From Blastocladiella emersonii ATCC 22665 (Eukaryota > Fungi > Blastocladiomycota), in contig JANHCV010000007.1 in NCBI GenBank assembly GCA_025594325.1, forward strand, positions 496,001 to 560,000: a stretch of DNA of 64,000 bases, read 5' to 3'. The position numbers were made by a program, and so were the translations under genes. Shown here piece by piece: positions 319-25,677 of the stretch. The notes beneath the pieces were generated by a model that made no database searches, had not been told where the DNA came from, and saw nothing but the letters and a program-made list of their open reading frames with translations. Numbering within the stretch: the first letter of the stretch is position 1; each line of letters starts with the position of its first letter.

Positions 319-3300
319 TCAGTGCTCCGTCTGCGCGTGCTCCGCCGTCGCCCCGCTCGTCGTCGCAGTCGCCAGCACACTCGTCCCGACGACAGCGCCC
401 ACACGCGTCGGCGCAGGACTCCCTCCACCCCCGCCCGCATGTCCGCCGTACAGCCCCGCAAACGACTGTCCGCGGTTCGCGAGCGCGTACGCGAGCGCGT
501 CGGCCCACATGCCCGCGTCGGCGGGGGTCGCGGCCATCAGCTCGTACTGGTGGCCGTCCGTCAGCGCGATGGTGAAGGCCACGGTGGCGAGGTCGACGGG
601 CGCGTCGGTATCGGCGCCGGCGGCGGAGGAGGGTGAGGGGGGAGACGGAGGGGTGATCTTGGCCAGCTCGTCGATGCATAGCACGTTGCCAGTGTCCGAG
701 ACGTCCGCCTACACACACGCCGGGGTTAGCTTGACGTCGTTCTTGCGGATGCGGCATTCGTACCGAGTCGAGCGGCTCGAGCACGACCAGCCCCTGCTGC
801 GGGTACACGAGGAACCGCGCCGCCTTCCACGCCGCGCGCCACATGAGCCGCGCGGTGCGCGAGTGCCGGTAGCTGAGCACGCCCTCTTTCACGTACGCGA
901 GCGGCGGCGGGACTTTGGCGGGGGTGCTACCGGTGCTCTCGCTCGACTGCGTCATCGACGCCTTCCCACCGGCGCCCTTGGTCGAAGCGCCGCGGGTCTG
1001 CGAGTCCTCACCGCCAAACGAACCGCCCGTCCGCGCCTCGCTCCCACCCCCCGCGCGGCTCCCGCTGCGCTTCCCCGGCTCCGGCAACCCGCGGACCGTG
1101 CGGACGCCCGCGGCGACGAGCGGCGCGAGCAGCGTCGCGACGAGGGTCCCCGTGGCGAGCATCGTGCCCATGGCGAGGATCGCGTACTGGAGCGGCTGGC
1201 CGAGCGTGTTGAGGTAGACGAGCGGCGGCGCGACGAGCGCGATGAGGGCCAGGTTGTACGTGCAGAAACCGAGCCCTTTCGCCTCGGGGAACTGCGCCGC
1301 CGAGGCTTTGCGGGTTTTGACGGCCAGGTACAGCAGGAACGCGAGCTGTGCTCCCCCAAAAACGAACAGGATGGCGAGCATCGCGGTTTCGAATGCGGGG
1401 GATCGCGACGCGCACGCCGTGTATCGCGAAAGCGTCTGCGGCACGTCCGCGGGGACGCGCGGGTCGACGGCCGTCCAGACCGCGAGAACGGCGGCGGTGG
1501 TCCCGATGGACGCGGCGCGGAACATCATCCGCATGCGCGCGGGGACCGCGTTGATCGCGAGCCGCCGCGCGAGCGGGTTGCGGTGCAGCATGTACACGTG
1601 GAACAGGTTCATCCCCATGGCGTTGAACACGGTCGACGCCGCGAGCCCGGTCACCCACGGCTGCACGATGCACTGGAACGGCGTCGGCACACCGACGTAC
1701 ACCGCGGGCACAAAGTACGCGAGGAACGCGCCCGCCAGCATCTGCGCCGCGAGCGACGGGCACGACGACAGCGTGCGGCGCCACCGGGTCGGGTCCGACT
1801 TTGTGCGCAGGTGCGACGCGAGCGCGTAGAGCGCGAACAGGACGATGGTCAGCTGCCCGAGCGCCGCGAGGACCAGCATCACGAGCCCGACGGCGTCCGT
1901 CGCCTGCACGTTGGTCGGCAACCCCAGAAGGTCGATGGCCATGACCTGCGCGATCACCGAGTTGATGGTCGCTAGCATCTCCTCCTCGGTCACCTGCCCG
2001 CGGAGCATGTTCGCCCAGTTGGTGTAGATGGCCTGCGACACGTCGAGCCACTGTGTCCCGGCGACGGCCGAGGGCCGGGCTACGGGCTACACGCGAGGGG
2101 GCGGGGTTAGAGCGCTTGTAGCGGTGGTGATAGAGAGGGACGTACCTTGACTGCCTTGAAGATGTCACACCCGCCGACCGCCGCGCACACGGCCGCATCG
2201 TCCCACAGCCCCGTGAGCGACGGCAGCACGCCATGCGCGACGGCCCGTGCCGCCTGGACCTGCCGGCTCGCGAGCCACGCCGCCGCCAACAGCGTCGCCG
2301 CGCGGTCCGTCCCCGCCGGCGTCGTCGCGCTGCTGACCCCGACCATCATCCCGCCGACCATACTCACGCCCGCATCCGCCGCGACATTCCCCGGGATCGG
2401 CGCGCGCGCCCACGCGAAGCTCACGTTCCCCGCGGCGCGCGGCAGCCACGACCAGTGCCGCAGGTAGACCGCGTTGCCGCGCTGCCACTCGTCGAGCGAG
2501 GCCAGGTCGTCCGACACGATGGCGGGGGCCCCGATCACGCCCGACTTGATCCAACGGCGCGCGCGGCGCGCGGTCGCGAGGGCCGCGGGGTACAGAGGCG
2601 ATTTCGCGGTTGAGGAGAGAGTGCGGTTGGGTTCGAGGACCGAGCCCGCACGGTACGACGCCAGCCACTCGAGGGCCGCGGCGGTTAGGCCTTCGGCGGA
2701 GCGCAGCTGCGACATGTACCCGATCAGCGCCGGGTTCTTGACGCGTTCCGAGGGGAGGGTCGCGTTCAGCGCGCGCTCGATGTCGTCCCACTACATTCGC
2801 GCAACGGTGAGTGAAGGCGGCGGGAGAGGGTGAGAGGGGAGAGGCCGGACCGTCTTGGGCGCGTCAGCGAACCCGTACTTGGCGAGCAGCGAGGTCTGGT
2901 AGTACAGCACGCCGAGGTCGAGCGACACGGGCAGGCCGACCCTGTCCACCAACTCGTTAGCCCTCGCTCGCCTCCTCGCACCGCTGAAAAACGTACTGCG
3001 CCCCGTTAATCATCCCCGCGCCCAGCACCTGCGGGAGATGCCCCGCGAGCGTGCTGCCCGACAGCCCCTGGCTCAGGTTGTACAGCGACGGCGACAGCGC
3101 GCCGGCCCAGATCCCGTCAAACACGACCACGTCCGTCGCGTTGTTGAGCAGCGCGTTTTGCAGGTTCGAGAGGATGTCTACCCGAGGCGGTCGCGCGGTC
3201 AGCGACGCGTCACTCGCGTGTGTGTGTGTGTGGGTGGCCACGGACCCGTCGTCGTGAGGCCCGGATTCCACGTCAGCGCGAGATCGATGCCCGACGCCGC

Positions 3301-3582
3301 GGACCACGACGCGGCGAGCGGGCCGAGGACCGACTCTTCGTCCGTGATGTTGGTTGTCGTCGGGACTAGACGCGCGTCCGCGGGTCAGCGACGCGTGGAT
3401 GTCGAGGGGCCAGGACGACGTACGCGGCGTGATCAGGACGCGGACGGTTGGCCGACAAGCTGCGCTAGGACAAATCGGGCGAAGCTCAGTCGCCGAGAGC
3501 CGAGAAAGTGGCGGCGCATCGTACACGCGAGGCCCGCGAGGGCGGCGAGCAGCGCCAGCGCGCTCAGGTACAGGCGGTGCAT
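319..3582 (-). CDS. Multi-exon receptor: signal peptide + sugar solute-binding protein (TMBP-like) + class C GPCR 7TM + C-terminal PH domain (copy R1)
   Basis: Hand-spliced. Signal MHRLYLSALALLAALAGLA. SBP motifs LPVSLDLGVLYYQTSLLAKYGFADAPKT|WDD and AEGLTAAALEWLASY. 7tm_3-like motifs VGVPTPFQCIVQPW and AVKTRKASAAQFPEAKGLGFCTYNLALI. PH motifs VKEGVLSY...WKARRFLVY...FTIAL...YELMAATPADAGMWADAL. GT-AG introns with CTRAC branch sites restore the frame. Confidence 0.85.
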
Positions 3583-25400: not shown

Positions 25401-25677
25401 GTCGAGTGCGCCGTGGGTGCTCCAGTTCGAGTTCGCGGGGCAGCTGCTCGAGGTGTCGGGCCCGCGCGCCGTCGTGTCGGAGTGGCTCATGGTGTTTGAC
25501 GCGTTCCGCGACCGCGAGGCCGAGCATCCGGCGGCCGTCCCGGATAGCGCGGCGCCGACGGCCGCAGCAGCGGCGGGGCATCCGGGCGCGACGCTCGGGC
25601 TCACGCTCGCGCGCGGCGACTCGGATGGGCAGTTCGGGATGAGCATGGCGCGCTCGGCGTCGGACGGGCCGCTGTGA
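22413..25677 (+). CDS. Multi-exon SBP(TMBP-like)-class C 7TM receptor with PH-like tail (copy R4)
   Basis: Signal [86 protein letters not shown]. 7TM including LGLRTTAQCW. Tail RFVLDL...RVLVVVE...VLQFEF...LLEVSG...VSEWLMVF. Confidence 0.85.

Follow-up and report, generated by a model that had tools for sequence, protein, structure and literature searches.

Three old paralogs in Blastocladiella emersonii join a TMBP-like solute-binding domain to a class C seven-transmembrane bundle and a predicted PH-fold tail

The joining of a bacterial-type solute-binding protein (SBP) domain to the seven-transmembrane (7TM) bundle of a class C G-protein-coupled receptor (GPCR) has already been published, for Allomyces in 2012 and for anaerobic gut fungi and Plasmodiophora in 2016. 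In Allomyces macrogynus, Krishnan et al. (2012) listed eight Glutamate-family GPCRs that carry SBP_bac_1 (PMC3251606). In three anaerobic gut fungi, Seppala et al. (2016) reported a sugar-type type II SBP on about half of some 100 class C GPCRs (PMC5168858), in agreement with the first-pass annotation of the DNA studied here, which had mentioned such fusions. Rolfe et al. (2016) described Plasmodiophora proteins with 7tm3 and SBP_bac_1 and read them as transporters (PMC4815078). Here we analyse three genes of this architecture, g1, g2 and g3, from Blastocladiella emersonii ATCC 22665. They lie within bases 496001-560000 of contig C19, a stretch of 64,000 nt that we call the window and to which all gene positions below refer. 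The assembly has 32.65 Mb in 21 contigs, the number given for the published B. emersonii assembly, and the genome paper mentions diversified GPCRs only generally (PMC9730499). The three genes are therefore not a new family. We read them as three old paralogs that encode a signal peptide, a type II SBP resembling the trehalose/maltose-binding protein (TMBP), a class C 7TM bundle and a pleckstrin homology (PH)-fold tail, and whose ligand has probably changed from plain trehalose or maltose. We put the probability of this reading at about 0.75.

The window is GC-rich (55-73% per 2-kb bin). Spurious long open reading frames (ORFs) are frequent at such a GC content, so we worked from frame translations and homology. 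Gene models were obtained by enumerating GT..AG introns that keep the frames open, guided by the paralogs P0001 and P0003. In these homology-guided models all three genes are intact and contain introns, with uninterrupted frames of 947, 856 and 962 aa. Gene g1 runs on the minus strand from the ATG at 3582 to the stop at 319 and has eight exons (3582-3525, 3459-3424, 3365-3246, 3177-2997, 2941-2851, 2790-2146, 2086-764 and 708-319). Gene g2 occupies 9296-12094 on the plus strand in five exons (9296-9820, 9876-10211, 10272-10509, 10566-11437 and 11495-12094). Gene g3, also on the plus strand, extends from 22407/22413 to 25677 in eight exons (22407-22517, 22577-22720, 22773-22846, 22900-23125, 23183-23756, 23811-23863, 23915-24763 and 24820-25677), the possible start at 22407 being two codons ahead of 22413. 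The predicted introns are 51-68 nt long, and most have a GTACGN donor and a YAG acceptor like those of the annotated paralogs. For intron 1 of g1, two donor/acceptor pairs are equally acceptable (3524-3460 or 3526-3465).

All three genes share a phase-0 intron at PxT-WD (the dash marks the intron), placed exactly after the Thr codon and before the Trp codon. In g1 it lies at APKT-WDD (2850-2791, minus strand, 60 nt, GTCCGG..TGTAG), in g2 at APRT-WDE (9821-9875, plus strand, 55 nt, GTACGG..TGTAG) and in g3 at PPTT-WDE (23126-23182, plus strand, 57 nt, GTACGA..TGTAG). Each protein begins with a hydrophobic, signal-like segment; signal peptides were assigned by inspection and hydropathy only. The first-pass annotation had placed three intact genes here, with signal peptide, SBP and 7TM and with this shared intron. 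The open frames, the hydropathy and the Pfam matches bear this out, and the intron is real in all three.

The ectodomains cover 1892..3528 in g1 (minus strand, aa 19-442, introns included), 9392..10813 in g2 (plus strand, aa 33-449) and 22583..24109 in g3 (plus strand, aa 40-459). Pfam, PDB and structure searches were run with single exons or with the annotated paralog P0001, and the joined spliced models were used only locally (phmmer, BLAST, MAFFT, tree and hydropathy). The exon ORFs of g2 and g3 matched SBP_bac_1/SBP_bac_8 above cut-off, with 35 bits for exon 1 of g2 (SBP_bac_1 E 2e-8) and 30.3 and 29.4 bits for the exons of g3. The SBP exon of g1 (exon 6) is weak in Pfam (SBP_bac_8, 17 bits, E 0.005); it matches the Thermus binder structure 6JAZ with E 1.6e-12 and the SBP of P0001 with E 1.4e-45. 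When the joined models were compared with the P0001 SBP by local phmmer, we obtained E values of 1e-85 to 1e-95 (7e-95 for g1). The 744-aa open frame of P0001 itself contains Pfam SBP_bac_1/8 and 7tm_3. Its ectodomain found the 6J9W series of Thermus thermophilus (E 6e-67) and the Thermococcus TMBP 1EU8 (E 1e-37) in the PDB, followed by Thermotoga MalE3 and a sulfoquinovosyl-glycerol binder. The hit order was the same for exon 5 of g3 (6JB0, E 1.5e-17) and exon 1 of g2 (best PDB match E 1.2e-9). The 6J9W series, 1EU8 and 6DTQ thus head the PDB searches, and for g1 only the 6J9W series matched. The ligand in the structure is maltose in 6J9W and trehalose in 1EU8 (PMC12096829).

Among bacterial proteins, the closest relatives carry annotations as trehalose/maltose binders and share 31-36% identity. 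Five residues of YEGLTC (E, G, L, T and C) do not vary in 44 of 44 close bacterial homologs, in which GNAxFMRNW is almost fixed as well. These homologs were sampled via shared 5-residue words, which inflates the invariance and makes it partly circular; with this reservation, YEGLxC and GNAxF(M/E)RNW stand as the hallmarks that the first-pass annotation had taken them for. At YEGLTC the copies differ as it had described, with AEGLTA in g1, an intact YEGLTC in g2 and YEGATC in g3. The second motif reads GNAVYLRHW in g1, GNALFMRNW (intact) in g2 and GNAVFMRNW in g3. We found no Pfam match to the type I ligand domain PF01094 (ANF_receptor); the ectodomain is of the SBP_bac_1/8 family, type II. These sequence matches support the assignment of all three ectodomains to a TMBP-like type II solute-binding domain closest to trehalose/maltose binders. 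Both the proposed fusion of an SBP to a class C 7TM and the grouping of the SBP nearest to sugar binders, with 6J9W and 1EU8 leading the structure matches, were therefore correct.

A short linker joins the SBP directly to the 7TM bundle, and the cysteine-rich domain is absent. The 7TM regions lie at 1088..1891 in g1 (minus strand, aa 443-710), 10814..11623 in g2 (plus strand, aa 450-700, with the transmembrane segment 6 (TM6) intron at 11438-11494) and 24110..24951 in g3 (plus strand, aa 460-721, TM6 intron 24764-24819). Each gene matches 7tm_3 (PF00003) above the gathering score. In a six-frame genome scan g1 scored 88.3 bits at 1130-1903 (minus strand), covering positions 3-247 of 251. The exon ORF of g2 scored 55.2 bits (E 1e-14), and g3 reached 33.7 bits against a cut-off of 33.5 on an exon that lacks TM7. 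A family 7TM hidden Markov model built without the window genes gave 200 bits for g1, 123 for g2 and 57 for g3 (E 4e-19). A Kyte-Doolittle scan with a threshold counted seven segments in g2, seven in g3 and five in g1, where the near full-length Pfam match covers the two segments below threshold. The cysteine at the top of TM3 and its counterpart in the second extracellular loop (ECL2) are present in g1, g2 and g3 and also in the canonical ANF plus 7tm_3 receptors P0044 and P0054. The class C 7TM fold can be considered a safe prediction for all three proteins, as had been proposed before.

The C-terminus is formed by a further domain, which is about 105-190 residues long and in some members carries an insert. 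It is common to the aligned family members, chytrids included, with the exception of the truncated Catenaria model P0061. In g1 it lies at 472..898 (minus strand, aa 774-897), is split by a phase-0 intron (763-709) and carries an insert; in g2 it lies at 11765..12082 (plus strand, aa 748-853) and in g3 at 25195..25518 (plus strand, aa 803-910). The AlphaFold2 model of the g2 tail (11765-12091, with 21 homologous tails) had a predicted local distance difference test score (pLDDT) of 91.6 and a predicted template modelling score (pTM) of 0.84. It consists of strands at residues 3-13, 25-32, 37-42, 50-54, 58-63, 70-75 and 78-83 and a helix at 86-105. Foldseek matched this model in the PDB to PH domains only, with a probability of 1.0 and TM-scores of 0.55-0.67; the PH domain of GRK2 came first (E 4e-4), with many others close behind. 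ESM Atlas matches comprised PH, PH-GRAM, PH_TFIIH and bacterial PH clusters (TM-scores 0.65-0.73), and an ESM Atlas feature search with the tail gave no usable match. Pfam PH matched weakly in 6 of 22 tails. When the tail profile was run against the genome it found 12 loci, every one beside 7tm_3 matches, g1, g2 and g3 among them (g1 at 752-895, E 4e-8; g3 E 1.4e-25).

On the strength of this model, the tail of the three receptors is predicted to be a PH-fold domain, a module absent from the first-pass description. No lipid-binding or G-beta-gamma-binding motif could be assigned in it. We also considered a special link to GRK2 and rejected it, since other PH, GRAM, TFIIH-PH and bacterial PH folds match equally well. 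A literature search found no mention of a PH domain on SBP-7TM receptors, which is not proof of novelty. Two more loci in the genome, C11:237.6k and C15:1932k, combine 7tm_3 with a PH-fold tail and have no SBP match.

B. emersonii has nine loci with SBP-type receptor genes. Seven are on one 580-kb stretch of C19 (at about 181k, 276k, 433k, 496k, 505k, 518k and 759k), and the other two are at C1:212k and C2:929k. The paralog 220 kb upstream is identical to the NCBI protein H9P43_006061 of B. emersonii ATCC 22665. Matches to 7tm_3 number 77 genome-wide, which is an exon-level figure and not a gene count. The three window genes share 28-36% identity with one another (g2-g3 36%, g1-g2 29%), and g1 shares 34% with P0001. 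A recent tandem duplication was rejected on these values and on the division of the genes into two old clades; the clustering on C19 is thus not explained by recent duplication, because the genes are old paralogs. Word-index searches that took the 744-aa open frame of P0001 or its SBP region as query found proteins with SBP and 7tm_3 in the Blastocladiomycota B. emersonii, Allomyces arbusculus, A. javanicus, A. macrogynus and Catenaria anguillulae and in the Chytridiomycota Phlyctochytrium, Dinochytrium, Chytriomyces and Irineochytrium; the annotated products of g1, g2 and g3 were not among the matches.

We built an unrooted maximum-likelihood tree of 79 SBP domains (quick search, LG+C20) with a word-drawn bacterial sample. 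All 27 fungal receptor SBPs (27/27) fell on one side of a branch with a support of 99 in the Shimodaira-Hasegawa-like approximate likelihood ratio test (SH-aLRT). The blastoclad SBPs formed one clade (98), in which g2 and g3 are sister to each other (97), with an Allomyces group as their neighbour. Gene g1 paired with the B. britannica model P0070. P0070, to which g1 is most closely related, combines an SBP with the tail, shows no detectable 7tm_3 and is probably an incomplete model. Another model, P0063 of Chytriomyces hyalinus, ends in a ribosomal S10_plectin domain and probably represents two genes fused by the annotator.

The introns add a second line of evidence. Annotated proteins were mapped back to their loci and all introns were placed on one alignment. 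The PxT-W phase-0 intron is present in 6 of the 6 B. emersonii genes examined and in Allomyces arbusculus P0003, and two chytrid genes, Phlyctochytrium P0006 and Irineochytrium P0008, lack it. Both phyla have introns at two further positions: a phase-1 intron directly ahead of D(Q/P)xxC in the SBP (g2, g3, P0002, P0058, P0003 and P0008) and the phase-0 TM6 intron (g2, g3, P0058, P0003, P0006 and P0008). A phase-0 intron within the tail domain occupies the same or a nearby column in g1, P0002, P0058, P0003 and P0008. As two positions are common to both phyla, the fused, intron-bearing gene is older than the chytrid/blastoclad split. The genes are, as far as sequence comparison goes, old paralogs of a zoosporic-fungal receptor family with orthologous groups across Blastocladiomycota and Chytridiomycota. 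The first-pass annotation had proposed an SBP of ancient horizontal origin. Its age stands, given the single fungal split (SH-aLRT 99) and the two cross-phylum introns, but the direction of transfer is only inferred. The tree is compatible with a single old acquisition from bacteria, the direction being unproven in an unrooted tree.

The same TMBP-like SBP was also seen elsewhere, in metagenomes and NCBI entries, fused to a protein kinase (P0074) or to a histidine kinase that also carries a receiver domain (P0077), and once as a tandem double SBP (P0057). The domain has thus been connected to signalling outputs of several kinds.

The layout predicted for the receptors is a cleavable signal peptide, an extracellular two-lobed SBP, a short linker, the 7tm_3 bundle and a cytoplasmic tail that ends in the PH fold. 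The cleft would bind a solute that is small and polar, most likely a carbohydrate or a compound akin to one, and binding would cause the two lobes to close. Closure would be relayed to the 7TM bundle, probably within a dimer as in other class C receptors, and the signal would then pass to a G protein and/or to whatever partner the PH-fold tail binds. A further-reaching version holds that the whole three-module receptor (type II SBP, class C 7TM and PH-fold tail), introns included, predates the split of Chytridiomycota and Blastocladiomycota, that the signal travels through the tail as well as through a G protein, for instance via membrane lipids or G-beta-gamma, and that the g2/g3 branch has lost canonical G-protein switching. 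We put this forward tentatively; as a package it is rather unlikely.

What the ectodomains may bind can be judged from the pocket. In Athe_2310 the conserved pocket residues are D69, F119, D121, E225, W243, G278, G279, W280 and R351, common to TtMBP, TMBP and TmMBP3 (PMC12096829). Their motif equivalents are the D of DxxW, F-x-D, the E before GN, the W of RNW, GGW and the R of xRP, which by motif are D70, F116, D118, E230, W248, G285 G286 W287 and R356 in TtMBP numbering. The printed alignments contain deposited variants of the 6J9W series, namely R49A in 6JAR, D118A in 6JAI, W287A in 6JB0 and W287F in 6JAZ, and we took R49, D118 and W287 as the depositors' choice of binding residues. D70, W248 and R356 are kept in g1, g2 and g3. 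At E230, g1 has Asp while g2 and g3 retain the Glu, and the R49 equivalent is Tyr in g2. Chytrid family members retain PFFxD and GGW. We conclude that the ancestral SBP was, judging by these motifs, of the alpha-glycoside-binding kind.

Several points weigh against our reading of the three genes. The gene models were predicted solely from homology and splice consensus, the pocket residues were transferred from Athe_2310/TtMBP numbering by motif, without a structure, and the papers cited here on the SBP-7TM family report no measured ligand or coupling in any organism. In the pocket, W287 is replaced by Met in g1 (GGM for GGW) and by Asn in g2 and g3 (GAN for GGW), the stacking Phe before D118 (F116) is Ser in g1, Thr in g2 and Ser in g3, and D118, which is kept in g1 and g3 (PYSND in g3), is Pro in g2 (PYTAP). 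The membrane bundle has changed as well. A Lys in TM3, an E-x-K motif in TM6 and a P-K motif in TM7 are the activation switches in the literature on metabotropic glutamate receptors (mGluR) and GABA-B. The TM3 Lys-x-x-Arg, the TM6 ESK-type motif and the TM7 PK motif are retained in P0001, the chytrid members and P0054, and the first two also in P0044. At these sites g2 reads AVQDLRVY, AKQQT and VLEQLY and g3 reads AAQDLQIY, SPESA and VRGRVK, so that all three motifs are lost in both, and g1 retains only PEAK. The Allomyces relatives of g2 and g3 show the same loss of the TM3 Lys and of the TM6 and TM7 motifs.

These changes bear differently on the possible alternatives. If all three receptors were still sensors of alpha-glucosides (trehalose, maltose or sucrose) that steer zoospore chemotaxis or germination, one would expect relatives annotated as trehalose/maltose binders, structural matches that bind maltose or trehalose, the retained D of DxxW, W of RNW and R of xRP, and the complete PFFxD and GGW of the chytrid members, all of which we observed. 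But the full TtMBP disaccharide pocket is incomplete in every one of them: the GGW Trp, the residue altered to Ala or Phe in the deposited variants, is gone from g1, g2 and g3, as is the stacking aromatic, and Pro stands for D118 in g2. Given these replacements at key pocket sites, plain trehalose or maltose is probably not the ligand any more, and the proteins probably bind another compound or bind in another way. Unchanged alpha-glucoside sensing is thus unlikely. Of the alpha-glucoside receptor proposed in the first-pass annotation, the nearest structure (6J9W) and the retained D70, W248 and R356 speak for the descent, but the replaced W287 and the Pro in g2 speak against the ligand itself. 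It had also taken the YEGLTC variants as a sign of different ligands. The variants are real, but they are a poor indicator and weak evidence, because YEGLTC is outside the pocket residues named in PMC12096829. A pocket of g1 that differs from those of g2 and g3 nevertheless fits different ligands. A role in zoospore chemotaxis or germination is speculation.

The loss of the microswitch motifs makes it uncertain whether g2 and g3 couple to G proteins in the canonical way. Their 7TM might even have ceased to couple to G proteins, the proteins acting as ligand-regulated scaffolds that signal through lipid or protein binding of the PH-fold tail. The loss of all three switches from g2, g3 and the Allomyces group would fit this, as would the conservation of the tail across the family. 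The bundle is, however, still conserved and intact over a long divergence (g2 and g3 share 36% identity over their full length), the class C cysteine pair is kept, the loss of single microswitch residues is no proof of lost coupling, and the tail has no known partner. We consider such scaffolds quite unlikely. The proteins could also be solute transporters or transceptors, as the similar 7tm3 and SBP_bac_1 proteins of Plasmodiophora were called novel putative transporters (PMC4815078). The membrane part is nevertheless a 7tm_3 receptor fold without a transporter or ABC domain. Bacterial SBPs ordinarily serve ATP-binding cassette (ABC) importers, their usual partners, but no permease or ATPase genes were seen beside g1, g2 and g3 in the ORF lists of the window. 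A transport function is extremely improbable.

It is also very improbable, if slightly less so, that one or more of the genes are unexpressed relics or that their models are wrong. The splicing is a prediction, a search for RNA sequencing runs over 7400-12300 returned none, the first intron of g1 is ambiguous and a shortened, stop-containing copy of g2 adjoins g2. Against this, the frames stay open across 856-962 codons in DNA of 65-70% GC, intron positions are common to annotated paralogs and Allomyces, and the domains are conserved relative to orthologous groups in other genera. Bacterial contamination was rejected on the spliceosomal introns, the fusion to eukaryotic domains and the location on a 2-Mb contig. 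We therefore retain the reading of three intact, old receptor paralogs with a probably changed ligand.

The copy next to g2 lies at 7443-8980 on the plus strand and corresponds to the 3' half of g2, from TM1 through the PH-fold tail, without the solute-binding part. From about 7730 on, its DNA identity to g2 is about 84%. It has an in-frame TAG at 8127-8129 where g2 has GAG (ADEW-E-YLAC), and it is for this reason probably a pseudogene rather than a ligand-free receptor. The interval between g2 and g3, at 12140-22425 on the minus strand, is filled by ORFs that contain leucine-rich repeats and end in acidic tails rich in Asp/Glu; 12140-13171 and 20533-22425 are examples. Directly after g3, at 25729-26673 on the minus strand, follows an ORF of 314 aa with repeated GNNG(I/V/T)ITGNN units and a high content of Gly, Asn, Gln and Thr.

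The family illustrates that class C receptors are able to use a type II binding domain of the sugar-transport type instead of the type I flytrap of animals. Our analysis adds exact gene models, a nine-gene family with seven members on one contig, and introns that date the fusion before the chytrid/blastoclad split. It further adds the altered pocket of these copies and the conserved, predicted PH-fold tail, which the cited receptor papers do not mention. B. emersonii is under development as a sensory model and offers a tractable organism for ligand finding. If ligands are found, the ectodomains could be used as parts of eukaryotic sugar or solute biosensors.

Each module can be compared with a known system. 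With TtMBP (6J9W series) and TMBP (1EU8) the ectodomains have the motifs DVIWP, YYRxDLL, PPxTW, YEGLTC, GNxxFMRNW and xRP in common. TtMBP and TMBP are free periplasmic or lipoprotein partners of ABC importers, whereas the SBPs of the window are fused in-frame to a 7TM receptor, lack the GGW Trp and the Phe before D118 and, in g2, also lack D118. The tail resembles PH domains, with the GRK2 PH domain as the top match, in its seven-stranded sandwich and capping C-terminal helix with a conserved Trp; it differs in a sequence identity of only 10-20% and in having no assignable binding motif. Metazoan class C GPCRs share with g1, g2 and g3 the 7tm_3 bundle, the TM3-ECL2 cysteine pair and a large bilobed ligand domain, and GABA-B likewise has no cysteine-rich linker domain. 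In contrast to the window receptors, metazoan class C GPCRs have a type I (ANF_receptor) ligand domain and no PH-fold tail, and g2 and g3 lack the TM3 Lys, TM6 Glu/Lys and TM7 PK of those receptors.

Of the published proteins with this domain pairing, those of Plasmodiophora brassicae are rhizarian rather than fungal. They show the same two-domain pairing, 7tm3 with SBP_bac_1/PBP_like_2, and homology to trehalose, maltose and oligosaccharide binders (PMC4815078), and they are likened to the fungal family by description only. The gut-fungal class C GPCRs belong to another phylum, the Neocallimastigomycota, come from transcriptomes and are likewise compared by description only. In them, too, a type II SBP replaces the ANF/Venus-flytrap domain and there is no nine-cysteine domain, and the authors suggest zoospore sensing (PMC5168858). 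The report on Allomyces lists domains only, with no data on SBP subtype, pocket or introns, and the term 'pleckstrin homology' is absent from its text (PMC3251606). The Allomyces GPCRs come from the same phylum as our genes and have the same PF01547 plus PF00003 architecture. In the tree, the Allomyces proteins P0003, P0065 and P0068 belong to the clades that contain the window genes, and P0003 has the PxT-W intron too.

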